Sequence record: OQ031493.1
Reading direction: 5' to 3' (one strand)
DNA length: 64,000 nucleotides
The stretch's first letter is position 1, and each line of letters begins with the position of its first letter. The notes below the pieces were generated by a model. The model was given only the letters and a program-made list of their open reading frames with translations. It ran no database searches and was not told the DNA's origin. Shown piece by piece: positions 3,542-55,702 of the stretch. The position numbers and the translations under genes are program-made.

Positions 3542-5089
3542 ATGTCAAGTCCAAAACAATTACTCGTTTCATGTATCACTCTATTATGTTTAGAAAATCG
3601 AGAAGATTCTCCAGTGGAACCATCCAATGAATTGGTTACTGAGATTCTTGATACTCTAAATGATAAGGGTGGTACATTAGATGTAGATCATGGTCGACAA
3701 ACATTTTTAGATCTTCGTAATCTACTAGTGGATCTAAATAAGAAACAGAAAGCATATTTCCCAGCTACCCAACAGGTATTACAATCACTACAAGTATGTT
3801 GTCGTGAAGAAAGTTATCTATACGATGCTGTTAAAAATGCAGTAGAAGAAGAATTTCCAAATGGCATGGCATTAGCCATGCGTGTAACTTCATATCGTCG
3901 TGATCTAAATAGCTACTTAGCTGATGAGAAGGTAAAAGCTATTGTAAAAGAATGTTCATCAAAAATTCTTTTCAATAGAGGCTCTGCTGATATTCCGGCA
4001 ATCATTAATGAAATGGCAACCAGAGCTGACCCATATATTCGCGCGCGTGCTGAAGAGAAACACCCAGCTGAAATGGGTGCACTTGATTTTGGTAATTTAG
4101 ATTCTATTGAAGGCTTCTTTGAGGAAGCTAAAACTATTCTTTCCCCAAATGGTGCTTTCCGTACTGGATGGAAAGGTTTTAACAGGATGCTTGGTGATCT
4201 GGGTGCATTAAAACGTGGTGAATTTATTATCGGTGGTGGCCTACAACATCAATATAAATCTGGCGTTTCTATGAGTCTATTTTGCCATGTGTGTCTATTT
4301 AATAAACCATACATGCGTGATATCAATAAGAAACCATTAGTAATGTTTATTACTCTTGAGAATGAGATTCCGGATAACCTTATTTTCATTTATGAGTATA
4401 TTTACGAAAATGAAACAGGTATCAAGGTAGATCGTAGTTCTATTAGTAAAGCTGAAGCAGCTGAATATGTATCAGCTCGTCTCCGTGAAAATGGTTTTGA
4501 ACCAGTAATGTATCGTTTTGACCCAACTGAATTTACGATTGCTGGTTTAGTTAACTACCTAGATACATATCAAGCACGTGGTTATGAACTACAATATCTC
4601 TGCGTAGATTATCTAAACATGTTGCCTAAAACTGGATTAGTGACCAGTGTAGCAGGTGATGACGTTCGTCTCCTATTTAGGCGAATGCGTAACTATACTG
4701 CACCACGTGGTATCACATTCTTTAGTCCGCATCAGTTAAGTTCTCAGGCATTAGAACTAATCAGGGATAATATCCCACCAGAAGACTTTGTTAAACAAGT
4801 TGCTAACAAAGGTTACTATGACGGTTGTCGCCGACTTGGACAAGAACCTGATCTGGAATTCTTCTTCCACATTGTTAAAGTAAGTGGTAAGTATTATCTA
4901 ACTGTACAACGTGGTAAACACCGTAACGTTGTAAGTGATAGTAAGCATCACTATTTTGTTATGCCGTTTGATCCAGACCGTATTGGTGGTATTAGATGGG
5001 ATATCGATAAAGAAGAAAACAATTACATGGACTTTGTACCAAGTCTTAGCAATATGCAAGCAACTGGTGGAGATGACTGGGGATATTAA
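3542..5089 (+). CDS. dnaB: DnaB-like replicative helicase (gp118 ortholog)
   Basis: 515 aa; GAFRTGWKGFNRMLG, Walker A-like GGLQHQYKS, MFITLEN, Walker B LCVDYL, SPHQLS, C-terminal QRGKHR. Confidence 0.9.
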   Translation: MSSPKQLLVSCITLLCLENREDSPVEPSNELVTEILDTLNDKGGTLDVDHGRQTFLDLRNLLVDLNKKQKAYFPATQQVLQSLQVCCREESYLYDAVKNAVEEEFPNGMALAMRVTSYRRDLNSYLADEKVKAIVKECSSKILFNRGSADIPAIINEMATRADPYIRARAEEKHPAEMGALDFGNLDSIEGFFEEAKTILSPNGAFRTGWKGFNRMLGDLGALKRGEFIIGGGLQHQYKSGVSMSLFCHVCLFNKPYMRDINKKPLVMFITLENEIPDNLIFIYEYIYENETGIKVDRSSISKAEAAEYVSARLRENGFEPVMYRFDPTEFTIAGLVNYLDTYQARGYELQYLCVDYLNMLPKTGLVTSVAGDDVRLLFRRMRNYTAPRGITFFSPHQLSSQALELIRDNIPPEDFVKQVANKGYYDGCRRLGQEPDLEFFFHIVKVSGKYYLTVQRGKHRNVVSDSKHHYFVMPFDPDRIGGIRWDIDKEENNYMDFVPSLSNMQATGGDDWGY

Positions 5090-5098
5090 CAACATAAA

Positions 5099-5118
5099 GC
5101 TCTCCCTTCGGGGAGAGC
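5099..5118. terminator. Hairpin terminator after dnaB
   Basis: GCTCTCCC-TTCG-GGGAGAGC preceded by CATAAA. Confidence 0.8.
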
Positions 5119-5143
5119 ACTATAATTTTAATAGGTAATCTAA

Positions 5144-5512
5144 ATGAGTGCAATTGATAATTTAGTAAATACTTTAAGAAAAAATATTAGTGAATGTAGA
5201 AAGTTTAATCGCCCTCTATTTGCACGTGTATATGCCGCATCACAAAATTACGATAAAATCCGTTATGCTGTAGCAGAAGAAGCCCATTATTTTAAATATG
5301 GGAAATATGCAGAGGGTAATAATTTAAACATTGATGAACTCATCAGTGATCTTTATTTATATTACACTATTTACGTTGATATTATCCGTAAACCATTACC
5401 CGATCCTAATGGGGATTTTATCAGTATCGTAAACCAAGATCACTATACACACATCTACTGGGATTTAGATCGGTGTGAATCTATTCCAGATGATGTAAAG
5501 GAGTTAATGTAA
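5144..5512 (+). CDS. Hypothetical protein
   Basis: 122 aa ORF with AGGT RBS. Confidence 0.75.
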   Translation: MSAIDNLVNTLRKNISECRKFNRPLFARVYAASQNYDKIRYAVAEEAHYFKYGKYAEGNNLNIDELISDLYLYYTIYVDIIRKPLPDPNGDFISIVNQDHYTHIYWDLDRCESIPDDVKELM

Positions 5513-5513
5513 T

Positions 5514-5750
5514 ATGTACTATGGTAATGTTTATATTATCTTTATTGGTGGTTTATTAATATTTATCCTAGGATTGGTATTTGGAGGAATACTGGGAGAA
5601 GAGAACAATAACGTATATAAACTCAAATCCCAACAATTTGAATACTGCGTTAAAAATAAACAATCAAAAAATAATGACAGTGAAAATATCCAAGTTATTA
5701 AAGTATGCGCAGAGTCTATTGTACTCCTATATCCAACTAATGAAAAATAA
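5514..5750 (+). CDS. Small protein with N-terminal transmembrane helix
   Basis: 78 aa; hydrophobic YIIFIGGLLIFILGLVFGGIL; GGAG RBS; starts right after previous stop. Confidence 0.7.
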   Translation: MYYGNVYIIFIGGLLIFILGLVFGGILGEENNNVYKLKSQQFEYCVKNKQSKNNDSENIQVIKVCAESIVLLYPTNEK

Positions 5751-5758
5751 AGCATTTT

Positions 5759-5776
5759 AGCCCTCTTAGGAGGGCT
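5759..5776 (+). terminator. Hairpin terminator
   Basis: AGCCCTC-TTAG-GAGGGCT followed by TTTATG. Confidence 0.8.
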
Positions 5777-5779
5777 TTT

Positions 5780-6360
5780 ATGTCGTATGGCTAATATGCT
5801 AGTGAATAATGAATAAAATCGATTATAGAGCAAATTAGAAGGTATTAAAGGCATAAAGAAAGTCTATCTCTAGACTTATTATTTTTAATTAAAAAAATAT
5901 AATCTATACTGTGTCTCCTTTTAGGGAGACAGTATGTTTTAGCTAACGCTATTAGAATAATGCTAATATTATTTATTATTAGAATAAGGATATACCTTCG
6001 GTATAGTTTATTATGAAATAAAAGCCCCTACGGGGCGATCCGATTCCTCAGTTCCACATTAGGTAATATTCATGAGTAATATTTAATTACCAGTATCATT
6101 GAGTAATACTGGTAATAATATACTAGATTATTAACAATATGTATTGATCATTCTGATTAAGTCAAATTAGCTAATAAACAAATCAATTATCAACGAGTGA
6201 TAACTGGTATTGATTACTAGCTAAAGAGATTAATTAGGATATCTACATGAGGAGTCGCTACCCCATGTATTCTGGAGTTTCTCTTTAGCGGGAGACTTAA
6301 CTCCACTTGGGAGCCGCTTTAGCGGGCGGCTCTCACTTAAACAAAAAAAAGAATTCAGAT
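5780..6360. other. Non-coding, hairpin-dense AT-rich island (candidate structured ncRNA or origin)
   Basis: No credible ORF; about 9 stem-loops between two terminators (see findings). Confidence 0.5.
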
Positions 6361-6364
6361 AAGT

Positions 6365-6384
6365 CCCTCTCCTTTAGGAGAGGG
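6365..6384. terminator. Hairpin terminator
   Basis: CCCTCTCC-TTTA-GGAGAGGG just after the stop of 6393..6698. Confidence 0.8.
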
Positions 6385-6392
6385 GTTGTTTA

Positions 6393-6698
6393 TCATAGGC
6401 TTCTCCTTTCGGTTACATAGAACTTCTTCTGATCCATGTCAGTGTATGTTACTATGAAATTGTCGAAGGGGTTGATGGATACGGCTAAACCTGCGTTGTT
6501 GACGTATCCTATTGTAGGGCCAGCCCAATAACCAATGAAGTTACCTCTACGATCTCGACATTGGATAACATTATCGGCTTGCGTTTTCGCAACCGACATG
6601 CTATGGGTTGATCCATCGGGTCTCTTGAAAAAGAAACCTACTTCCTGCATTCTGTGCAGGTCAGGGCTAACATTGTTAGCGGTAACTGGAATTAACAT
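6393..6698 (-). CDS. Hypothetical protein
   Basis: 101 aa ORF, AGAGG RBS. Confidence 0.75.
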   Translation of the reverse strand: MLIPVTANNVSPDLHRMQEVGFFFKRPDGSTHSMSVAKTQADNVIQCRDRRGNFIGYWAGPTIGYVNNAGLAVSINPFDNFIVTYTDMDQKKFYVTERRSL

Positions 6699-6828
6699 GA
6701 TTGTTCCTCTTGTTAATCCAAGCCCACTTGGGCGAAAATGTTGAGTATTTTTTACTCAACGGCATATAGCCCTACTGTTACAGCAGTAGGGCTAATTCTT
6801 TTATTCTTAAAAGTTTAACTGAATAAAT

Positions 6829-6850
6829 GCCCTCTCCCGAAGGAGAGGGC
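6829..6850. terminator. Hairpin terminator
   Basis: GCCCTCTCC-CGAA-GGAGAGGGC, TTATGTCG on the plus side. Confidence 0.8.
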
Positions 6851-6863
6851 TTATGTCGTTAAT

Positions 6864-7139
6864 TTATTTAACCAGCGATGTTTCCCTAACACGAGAGATG
6901 CATAAATAATTACTGTAATCGCTGGGGTCGTACTCATCATACCCTAGACAACTTGTATGAATATATTCAGTACTGATATTAATCATATCAAGAGTAATAC
7001 CATCACCCCATTTCTTAGTTGCCATCTCGATAATATCGGCGATAGTATTGGCTACATAACAATCACCCAAGATATAAAAGGTATCTTCGGTATCATCCGG
7101 ACGAAAATGACGAATACCATTCTGTGTATATTCACCCAT
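6864..7139 (-). CDS. Hypothetical protein
   Basis: 91 aa acidic ORF, GAGG RBS inside the upstream small ORF. Confidence 0.75.
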   Translation of the reverse strand: MGEYTQNGIRHFRPDDTEDTFYILGDCYVANTIADIIEMATKKWGDGITLDMINISTEYIHTSCLGYDEYDPSDYSNYLCISRVRETSLVK

Positions 7140-7140
7140 G

Positions 7141-7284
7141 TTAATTATCCTCTTTTCCTTCTTGAGTATGATGAGTGGGCTCTACCCAGTAAAAATCAAT
7201 AAACAGATCAACTGGTTTACAGCCAACCATCTCGCTGTCATCGGCCCATTTACTTTCATCTACGATAATTTCTTCATTAGTCAT
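7141..7284 (-). CDS. Small acidic protein (47 aa, below ORF-track cutoff)
   Basis: AAGGAG RBS; MTNEEIIVDESKWADDSEMVGCKPVDLFIDFYWVEPTHHTQEGKEDN; tiles the gap between neighbours. Confidence 0.7.
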   Translation of the reverse strand: MTNEEIIVDESKWADDSEMVGCKPVDLFIDFYWVEPTHHTQEGKEDN

Positions 7285-11801: not shown

Positions 11802-11846
11802 GATAATATCCTATTAGTTAATGAATGTAGATTTATTTTGATTATA

Positions 11847-12008
11847 TTAAAACTTGATATTTAGAACACGTTTAGCTATTATAATACCAACATATACTCC
11901 TAGTGCTATCTCCGCATATTTGGTGATGACGTTTTTAATCTTCTTATGTTTAGGTGCCTCGGGCACATCCGCGATAAGTTTTTGAAGTTTAACTTTATCA
12001 ATATTCAT
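11847..12008 (-). CDS. Small protein with C-terminal membrane anchor
   Basis: Start moved to MNIDKV (AAGGA RBS); IALGVYVGIIIA. Confidence 0.7.
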   Translation of the reverse strand: MNIDKVKLQKLIADVPEAPKHKKIKNVITKYAEIALGVYVGIIIAKRVLNIKF

Positions 12009-12090
12009 TTGTATTTTCCTTTTTACGATTAATTGAAGGTTTAACAAACTCATTCAAATATAATTTTATTATCGTAATTATATTTGAATG

Positions 12091-12107
12091 GGGCCTCAGT
12101 GAGGCCC
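12091..12107. terminator. Hairpin, probable terminator
   Basis: GGGCCTC-AGT-GAGGCCC after the stop of 12117..12455. Confidence 0.55.
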
Positions 12108-12116
12108 TATCCATTT

Positions 12117-40718: not shown

Positions 40719-40724
40719 CGAAAT

Positions 40725-40749
40725 AAACCCTCCCATTACGGGAGGGTTT
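40725..40749. terminator. Bidirectional hairpin terminator
   Basis: AAACCCTCCC-ATTAC-GGGAGGGTTT then TATG. Confidence 0.8.
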
Positions 40750-40820
40750 TATGACGTGTAGAAGTTTATGTTAGCAGTAATAATCAATTGACAATATTTA
40801 ATTAGGAATACCTTCCATTT

Positions 40821-41189
40821 TTAATATCCTTCATTGAGTAGTTCCGCTAGAGCACGTGCCTGTGAAATATCAGTGGAAGCAAAAACATCAGAAAGATAAT
40901 TATCATGATCTTTCGCATTCTGACGCAATTCATCCATTAGATGTTTATTAGATACCGCCCATACTTTCCACAGATTTTTATAATCATCATATTTAGGATT
41001 ATATCCATCTAGTGGTGGTTTTCCTTTACCCGCTTTCCAGTGGTTGGAATATATGCGATATCCTTTACAATCTAACTGCCAAGCTTCCTCAATTGTTCTG
41101 CCATCAGGAAGCCTTGCGTAAAGAGCCGAGAATCTTTTGTCGCCAACAGATGAGCATTCATATCCTCCTCGGCGCCTCCACTGATATAT
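40821..41189 (-). CDS. Hidden 122-codon frame, NADAR-like; begins at ATA overlapping the polymerase stop or is reached by -1 frameshift
   Basis: IYQWRRRGGYECSSVGDKRFSALYARLPDGRTIEEAWQLDCKGY...LWKVWAVSNKHLMDELRQ...SQARALAELLNEGY; no stop in 122 codons, first ATG at codon 85. Confidence 0.75.
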   Translation of the reverse strand: MYQWRRRGGYECSSVGDKRFSALYARLPDGRTIEEAWQLDCKGYRIYSNHWKAGKGKPPLDGYNPKYDDYKNLWKVWAVSNKHLMDELRQNAKDHDNYLSDVFASTDISQARALAELLNEGY

Positions 41190-49624: not shown

Positions 49625-49642
49625 AAAAAAAATAAAGACAGG

Positions 49643-49664
49643 CCCCTCTCCATGTGGAGAGGGG
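49643..49664. terminator. Bidirectional hairpin terminator
   Basis: CCCCTCTCCA-TG-TGGAGAGGGG then TTTATG, between convergent genes. Confidence 0.8.
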
Positions 49665-49675
49665 TTTATGTCGCC

Positions 49676-49819
49676 TTACTTACGTGCAAAGCTAGCTACA
49701 AGACCTTTGATAGCTAGAGCGACCATCCAGGCCGTTAACCCCTTCATTGGGCGGATATCAACCCGTTCTTCGATATCCAGATTGCCCTCACTATTGATTA
49801 CCTCAATTCGTACTTGCAT
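49676..49819 (-). CDS. 47-aa protein with hydrophobic C-terminal helix (below ORF-track cutoff)
   Basis: AAGGAG RBS; MQVRIEVINSEGNLDIEERVDIRPMKGLTAWMVALAIKGLVASFARK. Confidence 0.7.
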   Translation of the reverse strand: MQVRIEVINSEGNLDIEERVDIRPMKGLTAWMVALAIKGLVASFARK

Positions 49820-49914
49820 GGTCTACTCCTTATCAGGGTGGGATATGATATTCAAAAGTCTTTTGATATAAAGATGGCATATTACCCCACCAATAAAAGG
49901 CGGGGTAATATTTA

Positions 49915-50109
49915 TTAAACCATCAGATATCCTAATGGGAATAAAGCAAAGAAGCCATATAAAACAACAAGCAGTGTCTTTTGGCGAACATACCGGGATT
50001 TAATACTATCTTTATCTAAGTCAAACTTGACATAAAGATAAATCTGATAACTTTTATATCCCATACTAGCCACAAGGGCTATTACTATAAGTTGACACAA
50101 AAAGACCAT
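49915..50109 (-). CDS. Small two-TM membrane protein
   Basis: 64 aa, two hydrophobic segments. Confidence 0.65.
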   Translation of the reverse strand: MVFLCQLIVIALVASMGYKSYQIYLYVKFDLDKDSIKSRYVRQKTLLVVLYGFFALFPLGYLMV

Positions 50110-50164
50110 AGTGGGATGCTCTTATTATTAGAGAACAATGATCAATTGTTCTTACATAGCATGT

Positions 50165-50356
50165 CTATTTAATATGCATGATTATCATATTAAATAACCA
50201 CAACCCTAACATAAGGGTAAACATACTGCAAATCAAGCCACTTACAATCATTGCTTTTTGTTTGATTGTTTTAGCAGCAGCAAGAAATATAATTGAAGTT
50301 ATTAATCCACTAAATGCAATTAATAGTGGTACTAAAAATAACAATACCCGAGCCAT
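50165..50356 (-). CDS. Small two-TM membrane protein
   Basis: 63 aa, GAGGTG RBS, two hydrophobic segments separated by KTIKQK. Confidence 0.72.
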   Translation of the reverse strand: MARVLLFLVPLLIAFSGLITSIIFLAAAKTIKQKAMIVSGLICSMFTLMLGLWLFNMIIMHIK

Positions 50357-50368
50357 ATAGACACCTCA

Positions 50369-54471: not shown

Positions 54472-55395
54472 TCAATGATCAGGGGCATATTCTAATGCAA
54501 TACCACTACATTCAAGCAGGTGATCAAACATAGCTACTGGGCGAGATCCACCAAATGGAATCTTTTCACGATCAACTGCAACTGGTACAGATGAAGGTTT
54601 TTCTGCTGTTAGCCAAGACTCGATAACCGCAGCATGCGCCAATGGGTTATTAGTTTGGTCTAAGATTTCAGCAGTCGGACCTGGACCAACTGTACAGTTA
54701 TATGACCGAGTTTCAGATTCACCGAATGACCGGATAGCTGTTTCTCGACCAGGTGTGCTAGCCCTATCAGCATTGTTTAACTTAGAAGGTAGACCAAATG
54801 GTTGTGTTTTTACAGATGCTGCTGCTGACCAGTCTTCACCAATCTTTTCTAGTAGCATCATGTAAAGTGGACCCATTAAGACATTATCTTTAGTTGTTAC
54901 CCACTTACCAGCTTGATCTCGATAAGATACCTTCCCATAGTGTGGTCGATACTTATCGCTATTAATTAATTTGTTGACTGCTGCCATTAGATCCACTGGA
55001 TCATCAACTGGTGCGTAGATATATGGGAATCCATCCATTAGTACTGTTTTAACATGTTCTGCTGGATTTGGGTGTTCCATCATTTTACTATGCATTGTTG
55101 GAGCAATGATCTCATAGAAACCTAATAGTTCTTTAAATGCATAATCAACCCATTGCGTATTACCCATTACACTATTTAGTTGTTGCTGAGTTGGTTTGGC
55201 ATGTCGATCTAGTCCAGCTTCAACGCGTAGGCGTTGAGCTAGATCTCGTGCAGCTGCGCCAAAACCATGTTCATAAATTCGACCATAATTTGAACGACGC
55301 ATGGTTGAACCACCAAAGATAATTAGATCTGCCCTATTACCATTTTCGTCAATAGGCATATCTTCATCTTCCATTACCTTACAGATGACGCCCTT
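54472..55395 (-). CDS. nvRNAP beta C-terminal subunit, exon 2 (gp73 part of gp71-73)
   Basis: KGVICKVMEDEDMP...DLI, GPLYMMLLEK, RSFGESE, matching the RpoB C-terminal motifs. Confidence 0.92.
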   Translation of the reverse strand, partial: KGVICKVMEDEDMPIDENGNRADLIIFGGSTMRRSNYGRIYEHGFGAAARDLAQRLRVEAGLDRHAKPTQQQLNSVMGNTQWVDYAFKELLGFYEIIAPTMHSKMMEHPNPAEHVKTVLMDGFPYIYAPVDDPVDLMAAVNKLINSDKYRPHYGKVSYRDQAGKWVTTKDNVLMGPLYMMLLEKIGEDWSAAASVKTQPFGLPSKLNNADRASTPGRETAIRSFGESETRSYNCTVGPGPTAEILDQTNNPLAHAAVIESWLTAEKPSSVPVAVDREKIPFGGSRPVAMFDHLLECSGIALEYAPDH

Positions 55396-55702
55396 CGTTA
55401 TGTTCAGGTAAGTTCGCTACGCTTACCCCGCCTCTCGTATTGCAGGCAGCTGCATGTCACCATGCAGACCAGACTATATCTTAACCTTCACCCTAGGTGG
55501 TCAGGTCCCTCCCATTTCCACTCGCTTGAGTGTACTCCGCGTAACCGGATAGTCGTTGAACGTTCAATCCATTTCTGGAAAGCTTCGCTGCTGATTGTCT
55601 CATTGAGATGTCCCAGCAATTAGAGAGGATTTACTTGACTCTTTCGAGATCAAGCAGGCAATTTGACAATATCCATTCCTGAGAGATGGATGGATATTAA
55701 TT
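55396..55702 (-). ncRNA. Group I self-splicing intron (IA2-like, 307 nt, no homing endonuclease)
   Basis: 5-prime splice after U (GGTGGT/AAT), terminal G (TAACG/AAG); P AATTGCTGGGA, Q AATCAGCAG, R GTTCAACGACTAT (55549-61), S AAGATATAGTCT (55471-82); splicing restores TDFHGG-KGVICKV, homologous to RpoB GRHGNKGVISK. Confidence 0.93.

Follow-up and report, generated by a model that had tools for sequence, protein, structure and literature searches.

The hairpin-rich, non-coding stretch at positions 5780-6360 of a 64,000-nucleotide (nt) DNA segment from record OQ031493.1 (the window, to which all positions refer unless phiKZ coordinates are given) belongs to a phiKZ-type Pseudomonas phage, and its right third (6141-6338) encodes an already known, abundant, structured non-coding RNA that has been in the literature since 2021. 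The stretch is explained here as the promoter and leader region of a plus-strand transcription unit, and not as a DNA-replication element; this picture as a whole is considered likely, with less confidence placed in its antisense step. In that step, the longer form of the RNA is probably antisense to a minus-strand open reading frame (ORF) of 101 codons (ORF101) and not the mRNA of two annotated small genes, PHIKZ117.2 and PHIKZ117.1. The antisense reading, a genome-unique motif shared by two tandem hairpins, a doubly terminated spacer, and a 57-nt conserved element are new here.

The phage was assigned by a sequence match of 1.4 kb around the locus, which shows 100% identity with the Pseudomonas phages PA02, Brmt, and KEN49, and 98.5% with phiKZ (NC_004629, 114264-115664, reverse strand). 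The gap itself is 97.7% identical to the phiKZ gap, which lies between PHIKZ117.3 and PHIKZ117.2 in the phiKZ annotation. The order DnaB, 117.4, 117.3, gap, 117.2, 117.1 is kept as in phiKZ, and gp116 follows on the minus strand beyond PHIKZ117.1. The genome-wide counts and skews given below were computed on the phiKZ record (280 kb).

The RNA was described by Gerovac et al. (2021, mBio, PMC8545117), who used gradient sequencing and Northern blotting and reported an RNA of ~180 nt, the "first 180 nt" of the 5′ untranslated region (UTR) of p40 (PHIKZ_p40 is PHIKZ117.2), a longer form of ~880 nt, and no small ORF preceded by a strong ribosome-binding site. The complement of their Northern probe (JVO-18831) corresponds to 6179-6207 on the plus strand with one mismatch, where 0 chance matches are expected. 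The transcription maps of Putzeys et al. (microLife 2024, PMC10914365; bioRxiv 10.1101/2023.10.13.562163) place the start of P060, a "middle promoter" also seen by Wicke 2021, at phiKZ 114922 and RNA ends at 114725 (T053) and 114207 (T051), which define a 197-nt unit (TU089) and a 715-nt unit (TU088). These coordinates map to G6141, ~6338, and 6857, respectively, and the published flanks of P060 and T053 align with 6092-6141 and 6278-6377, apart from one flipped hairpin loop and a few letters missing from the PDF text. G6141 is the G of TATG, the start-site motif of Yakunina 2015. A structured RNA had been among the candidates of the earlier note made from the sequence alone, with a possible start at a TATG at 5779; that reading is right for the right third of the stretch, where the RNA had already been published, whereas no start is reported at 5779 in the available tables and the real one is the TATG at 6138-6141.

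RNA sequencing (RNA-seq) contigs from three studies agree with the published ends and cover 6146-6857. In run X10, a contig spans 6146-6865 at a depth of 110, with flanks at 17-28, and 5764-6145 is uncovered. In run X4, adapter sequence directly follows position 5784 and a contig extends over 5891-6857, while coverage in run X1 is continuous and adapter directly follows 6857. These adapters mark plus-strand RNA 3′ ends 7-8 nt past the hairpins 5759-76 and 6829-50, as for working terminators. The contigs give mean depth only, without strand, and carry phiKZ's own letters, so that they show phiKZ and not the present strain. A run of raw reads (X24, RNA immunoprecipitation sequencing, 2026) held no phage reads.

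The 197-nt RNA folds into a 98-nt imperfect hairpin (6146-6243), whose tip is the hairpin 6181-6215, followed by a short hairpin (6244-69) and twin hairpins (6273-6305 and 6308-35). Against dinucleotide shuffles, the fold reaches z = -6.24 for 6141-6345 and only -3.0 for 5782-6145, and the whole of 5777-6395 gives z = -6.80 on the plus strand and -8.11 on the minus strand. In a sliding scan over 3-10 kb, 5801-6400 appears as a low-z run on both strands; the neighbouring 6601-6900 reaches even lower z. Every stem listed by the earlier note is present within 1-3 nt of the positions given there (5860-77, 5906-35, 5991-6005, 6024-36, 6086-6116, 6181-6215, 6244-69, 6273-6305, and 6308-35), and the 11 bp of 6086-6116 are perfect, as claimed. 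The two tandem hairpins with an identical loop were likewise borne out. The stem sequences of the twins differ, and their tips are identical, with C-G, U.G, and U.G pairs closing a UAGC loop (common apical motif CUU-UAGC-GGG). The corresponding 10-mer, CTTTAGCGGG, is found twice in the window (0.03 expected) and at no other place in the phiKZ genome, and it is invariant across 10 genomes.

Across the same number of genomes, the 197-nt RNA is 98% conserved, with seven variable columns, one of them wobble-compatible, three unpaired, and three mildly disruptive. Only two of its 198 positions (6171 and 6205) depart from the phiKZ sequence, and the change C6171U keeps the pair with G6220 as a G.U wobble only in plus-strand RNA. 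The segment GCTAAAGAGA (6220-6229), in the 3′ arm of the long hairpin, is a perfect complement of TCTCTTTAGC (6280-6289), which comprises the loop and the 5′ half of the first twin hairpin, and GCUAAAG could pair with the second twin loop too; judged by this complementarity, the RNA may adopt another fold or form a loop contact. A 13-codon plus-strand ORF (6247-6288) also lies inside the RNA, with AGGA 7 nt upstream and a TAG stop that is the TAG of the first twin loop. In a Rfam search over 5000-7200 (E up to 10), only chance-level hits were obtained (best 13-24 bits, far under the gathering thresholds), 6S RNA not being among the matches of the gap RNA, and ARAGORN found no tRNA or tmRNA in the window.

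It was also considered that the 197-nt RNA acts in trans, as a decoy or scaffold that holds a dimeric protein of phage or host origin at its two identical tips, or by pairing with other RNAs, in which case read-through would be a by-product. The short RNA is both discrete and abundant, and it sediments away from mRNAs, with RNA polymerase and 30S subunits present in its fractions (Gerovac 2021, PMC8545117), and the twin apical motif is genome-unique and invariant although the stems differ, both of which fit such a role. However, no partner of the RNA is known, Rfam offers no match, and the RNA, P060, and the palindrome upstream of it are specific to Phikzvirus, with PS119XW of the sister genus Pawinskivirus lacking the region 6040-6340. 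A role in trans is taken to be unlikely, and it does not exclude a function in cis, the two being compatible. With regard to other phages, a conserved small RNA of 201phi2-1 lies upstream of gp182, at a different locus, and a 2026 review states that phiKZ expresses non-coding RNAs, giving their role as unknown.

The downstream part of the transcription unit was assigned differently by different annotators. The phiKZ RefSeq annotation places PHIKZ117.2 and PHIKZ117.1 on the strand of TU088, and most non-RefSeq annotators call ORF101 on the minus strand instead. ORF101 has its GAGGAA ribosome-binding site 6 nt before the ATG and is open in 47 of 47 phiKZ-type records and in nine of nine aligned relatives. 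Its minus-strand leader consists of a hairpin (6794-6767), TATATGCCGT, a second hairpin (GCCCAAGTGGGC), and the ribosome-binding site. In PS119XW, an unrelated minus-strand gene occupying the corresponding position has a homologous leader, and in the first hairpin of the leader one pair is changed on both sides (A-T to C-G), which is compensatory. Because of this homology, ORF101 is regarded, from sequence comparison, as occupying a conserved minus-strand expression slot. The PS119XW gene in that slot is related neither to ORF101 nor to gp116. A second hairpin cluster, between ORF101 and gp116 (6699-6863), folds more strongly still than the gap (z about -15 and -9 in 200-nt windows, from 10 shuffles only); two terminators stand back to back in it, and part of it is conserved in PS119XW.

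TU088 overlaps all of ORF101, including the ribosome-binding site. According to the tables of Putzeys et al. (bioRxiv 10.1101/2023.10.13.562163), a 249-nt RNA begins at a late start, P059, near 6606-6608 and shares the end at 6857; it is likewise antisense. The hairpin 6362-87, with TTAT on both sides, is probably the terminator of the minus-strand ORF; no published plus-strand RNA end is listed there in the available tables, and TU088 crosses it. The stretch is accordingly not the closed island that the earlier note had proposed, as a transcript starting inside runs through 6362-87 to 6857.

The following sequence of events is proposed, its first steps being shown by the re-mapped published maps and the RNA-seq contigs. 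The phage's own RNA polymerase starts at G6141 of the TATG (P060, middle class), and a strongly folded 197-nt RNA is made that ends 2-3 nt past the hairpin 6308-6335. Part of the transcription passes 6362-87 and reaches the terminator at 6829-6857, yielding the 715-nt RNA. This RNA and the nested late 249-nt RNA (start ~6606) may then serve as antisense over the whole of ORF101, with its ribosome-binding site. The folded 5′ domain could set how often the polymerase reads on into the antisense part and could also stabilise the RNA, and the twin hairpins, with their CUU-UAGC-GGG tips, would be a likely site of action for a protein or another RNA. The left part (5785-6140) would be a spacer of terminator-type hairpins that separates the DnaB operon from converging minus-strand transcription and also carries the upstream region of P060.

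Several observations weigh against this picture. All RNA data come from phiKZ itself and not from this exact phage, and the relatives are at least 96.5% alike, a divergence too small for covariation statistics. In addition, the RNA 3′ end lies 2-3 nt past a GC-rich 12-bp hairpin (6308-6335) and has no U-tract; it could have arisen by trimming and not by termination. In that case, the 197-nt species would be the stable 5′ remnant left after 3′-to-5′ exonuclease trimming of the 715-nt RNA back to that hairpin. The position of the end, the available Putzeys table (bioRxiv 10.1101/2023.10.13.562163), which does not class the 6338 end as intrinsic, and the canonical terminator-type hairpin just downstream (6362-87), which is unused as an end, all point in this direction. 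Nevertheless, many phiKZ terminators work with the phage's unusual polymerases in spite of lacking a U-tract, and trimming is thus rated as possible but somewhat unlikely; it would alter the origin of the RNA, not its existence.

Further points concern the antisense step. In the published long reads, as far as the tables were available, no minus-strand transcript over ORF101 was found, and the longest stops at ~6762. The codon usage of ORF101 is atypical (score 0.04, against 0.30 +/- 0.09 for sure genes), its synonymous and non-synonymous changes are about equal, and no relatives were found outside phiKZ-type phages among 5.8 billion proteins; there is also no Pfam match and no Atlas look-alike, and its PHROG contains its own kin only. 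The third codon positions of ORF101 and PHIKZ117.1/117.2 coincide, which makes the substitution rhythm strand-blind and useless as a strand test. The long form was reported to sediment like mRNA, near the 30S fractions (Gerovac 2021, PMC8545117). This sedimentation, the RefSeq placement of both small ORFs, and the Putzeys tables (bioRxiv 10.1101/2023.10.13.562163), which give PHIKZ117.2/117.1 to TU088, agree with the published annotation, according to which the 715-nt RNA is the mRNA of PHIKZ117.2 and PHIKZ117.1 and the 197-nt RNA is its leader, shortened by an attenuator hairpin. Yet neither start codon has a ribosome-binding site, PHIKZ117.1 carries a premature stop in three of nine relatives (Bobae and Churi, both at codon 3, and phage 124.01, at codon 16), the codon-usage scores of the two ORFs are -0.05 and -0.07, and the minus-strand ORF is preferred by most other annotators. 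The published annotation is therefore judged decidedly unlikely to be right here: PHIKZ117.1 and PHIKZ117.2 are probably not genes, and the phiKZ annotation probably names the wrong strand.

Compared with known systems, the element is the same as phiKZ 5′UTR_p40/TU089, with the same locus, strand, start, and end, in a sister strain. The Gerovac and Putzeys papers treat the phiKZ RNA as the leader of PHIKZ_p40/p39, whereas the long form is read here as antisense. A short, abundant, folded 5′ species and a read-through form from one start resemble attenuator or riboswitch-type leaders; unlike these, no ligand-binding fold, Rfam match, or clear alternative-structure pair is seen, and the RNA downstream of the 197-nt part may not be mRNA. 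Ribosome-coupled attenuation looks implausible, as transcription and translation are kept apart in phiKZ after formation of its nucleus (2026 review); the nucleus forms from about 20 min onward, and the 197-nt RNA is already found in the earlier 10-min samples. Full complementarity to a converging gene, including the ribosome-binding site, is shared with the cis-antisense RNAs lambda OOP and P22 sar, but the present RNA is much longer (715 nt), has a non-overlapping folded 5′ domain of 250 nt, and faces a putative target gene.

Table 1. Features of the locus, with positions in the window, strand, and basis.
Feature	Position	Strand	Basis
197-nt non-coding RNA TU089 ("5′UTR_p40")	6141-6338	+	Probe site, published ends, fold z -6.24
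715-nt read-through RNA TU088, ending at T051 (hairpin 6829-50 and TTATGTCGT)	6141-6857	+	Putzeys tables; contigs
Middle promoter P060: TACT 6121-24, TATG 6138-41, start G6141	6118-6141	+	Published start, minus strand of phiKZ record
ORF101, 101 codons, GAGGAA ribosome-binding site	6393-6698	-	Covered fully in antisense by TU088
PHIKZ117.2 (PHIKZ_p40), 31 amino acids	6436-6531	+	phiKZ RefSeq annotation
PHIKZ117.1, 69 amino acids	6535-6744	+	phiKZ RefSeq annotation
Hairpin with TTAT on both sides	6362-6387		Terminator scan; loop at 6374-75 strain-variable
Perfect 11-bp palindrome (inverted repeat I1), -55 to -25 of P060, 9-nt loop	6086-6116		Inverted repeat
PHIKZ117.3	5514-5750	+	phiKZ annotation
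Terminator of DnaB/117.4/117.3 operon: hairpin, then TTTATGTCGT	5759-5784	+	Fits phiKZ motif; scan; adapter at 5784
Spacer between facing terminators; hairpins 5860-77 and 5906-35, AT-rich imperfect palindrome 5871-5906, three ATTAGAR	5785-6015		Run X10; PS119XW layout
Direct repeat TATTAGAATAA, two copies 27 nt apart	5950-5992		Repeat family D3
57-nt conserved element, contains hairpin 5991-6005	5972-6028		Identity to PS119XW and seven relatives
Terminator-like hairpin GCCCCGTAGGGGC, then TTTTATTT	6016-6036	-	Scan; hairpin and U-rich tail kept in PS119XW

In phiKZ, the published terminator motif comprises a GC-rich hairpin with the loop HWWD (IUPAC code, A/T-rich), followed by TTATKYYGT. Genome-wide, TTAT follows 105 of 276 GC-rich hairpins (background 4.7%), and the region 5000-7200 holds 12 terminator-like sites against 1.1 expected. 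The terminators at 5759-84 and 6829-57 fit the motif (TTAT(G)YYGT) and mark real 3′ ends; the hairpins 6362-87, 5906-35, and 6036-24 resemble the same family, the last of these having the tail UUUUAUUU. The twin hairpins are unlike phiKZ terminators in having an extra CG in the loop and no TTAT tail. The TTTAG loops that the earlier note had singled out at 5919 and 6373 turned out to be ordinary loops of the terminator family, and positions 6374-75 vary among strains. The conserved tail TTATG also contains the late-promoter core TATG (e.g., at 5777-5784 and 6851-6859). Since TATG occurs within 9 nt after 80 of the 276 GC-rich hairpins, against a background of 3.5%, many phiKZ terminators may at the same time act as late promoters of the unit that follows.

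The insulation by terminators claimed for the stretch is real, but the facing pair consists of 5759-5784 on the plus strand and 6036-6016 on the minus strand, and not of hairpins at 5759 and 6365. No RNA end is reported at the minus-strand hairpin in the available Putzeys tables, in which 5785-6140 is likewise free of starts and ends on both strands, P060 being followed directly by P061 and T053 by T054; the lack of coverage in the run X10 contigs concerns the same region and stems from one study. The same facing-terminator layout is found in PS119XW, over ~245 bp.

No credible ORF occurs in 5785-6392, which agrees with the non-coding character assigned to the gap by the earlier note. In 5855-6392 there is no ORF of at least 70 amino acids, which makes it the second longest such stretch inside the window, and the only ORFs of at least 20 amino acids in it are one 29-residue and one 37-residue GTG/TTG frame. 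Further stretches of this kind (290-740 nt) are located at 49625-50368, 11802-12116, 40719-41011, and 55375-55696, the first of which, at 744 nt, exceeds the gap in length.

Within the left part, the 57-nt element is 89.5% identical to PS119XW and seven relatives and is the sole part of the gap that aligns between the two genera. In the same comparison, the DNA from gp119 to DnaB is 65.6% identical, the DnaB protein 63%, and the 117.4 protein 26%, and the element is the best-conserved DNA in 12 kb. Its hairpin (5991-6005) shows one compensatory change, T-A to A-T. It is single-copy in phiKZ and in PS119XW, and searches of IMG/VR, GTDB genomes, and metagenomes gave no match; a search of IMG/VR and metagenomes for relatives of the 117.4 protein, made to obtain loci of intermediate divergence, gave none either. 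The element was considered as an early promoter and rejected: by eye, neither strand fits the three published early promoters, and of the consensus ...TTTAAACAGTATATTACA... (~8 nt before the start) it shares only AAAC and GTATAT, 10 nt too far apart. The direct repeat TATTAGAATAA has only two exact copies, in the window and in the phiKZ genome alike. ATTAGAR occurs at 5834, 5951, and 5978 on one strand and three times on one strand in the PS119XW segment too; the triple is the only such cluster in phiKZ, the motif having been picked post hoc, with ~1.2 clusters per genome expected by chance. Elsewhere in PS119XW, a near copy of the phiKZ middle promoter P005 (AACAAAAGATTACTGGAGTTAGA) was noticed at 3692-3720, inside a minus-strand gene that annotators of PA1C describe as similar to phiKZ ORF024.

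A replication origin, also among the earlier candidates, would lie in the left part (5785-6140), alone or together with P060, and would consist of protein-binding repeats with an AT-rich palindrome or prime replication from a transcript in the manner of T4 oriF/oriG. The left part adjoins the DnaB operon, is shielded from transcription on both sides and uncovered in the run X10 contigs, has the one-strand ATTAGAR triple in common with PS119XW, and contains the element that tops conservation in the 12-kb comparison, and the 2026 review describes no origin for these phages. However, the cumulative GC and AT skews of phiKZ rise steadily through 115 kb, with their extremes at ~18 kb and 264 kb, so that there is no turning point at the locus. 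Local GC is 0.30 (genome 0.37), but the 15 most AT-rich 300-nt windows of phiKZ all lie elsewhere, and the AT-rich tract highlighted by the earlier note is thus not exceptional. Moreover, about one ATTAGAR cluster per genome is expected by chance, and the nearer relatives Psa21 and Viktualia lack such a gap (54 bp only and none, respectively). The small genes flanking the stretch tolerate transposon insertions as well. An origin is consequently very improbable, and the same applies to the broader idea that 5785-6015 is a DNA-level element, either the replication origin of phiKZ-type phages or a platform for a phage DNA-binding protein. The locus is like T4 oriF/oriG in that a middle-class promoter precedes an AT-rich palindromic stretch and replication genes are adjacent, and unlike them in that the transcript is a free, abundant RNA, R-loop or priming not being in evidence. 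By analogy with T4 oriF, the middle promoter and folded RNA may be coupled to the 5785-6015 element.

A packaging (pac) or genome-anchoring site, which had also been suggested, is barely credible: the non-coding, structured character of the stretch is the only feature in its favour, the locus is not the starting point of any of the ~60 phiKZ-type and Pawinskivirus records listed, and the element is not repeated elsewhere in the genome.

In the transposon data for phiKZ (bioRxiv 10.1101/2025.11.23.690004; gene-level tables), 117.1, 117.2, 117.3, and 117.4 tolerate insertions and DnaB does not; because of this tolerance, the right flank of the gap is regarded as dispensable in the laboratory. 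The phiKZ transposon and antisense-oligomer papers, in their gene-level tables, contain nothing on the gap or the RNA. On the left flank, phage SL2 lacks 196 bp matching 5529-5724 and with them most of PHIKZ117.3, which is therefore dispensable, and a 107-codon antisense ORF over PHIKZ117.3 (5531-5854), called by some annotators, is not conserved.

The loop of the palindrome upstream of P060 is present as its exact reverse complement in phiKZ and in five of eight other aligned relatives (AttikonH10, KTN4, 124.01, Bobae, and Churi). Among 128 comparable perfect palindromes, three have the loop flipped between phiKZ and the present phage (6086-6116, 6767-6794, and 40725-40749). In 10 close strains, the flip states at 6096-6106 and 6776-6785 disagree with each other and with neighbouring single-nucleotide polymorphisms, and because of these conflicting patterns the flips seem to recur.

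In this analysis, a non-coding RNA was re-found from raw sequence, and no new kind of element is added. If it is true that PHIKZ117.1 and PHIKZ117.2 are not genes, one of the few known phiKZ non-coding RNAs stands at the head of an antisense transcript that runs across a lineage-specific ORF. The genome-unique twin-hairpin motif readily lends itself to mutation or pull-down. The spacer, silent and terminated on both sides, and its 57-nt element are of interest in their own right, as no replication origin has been described for these nucleus-forming phages (2026 review).

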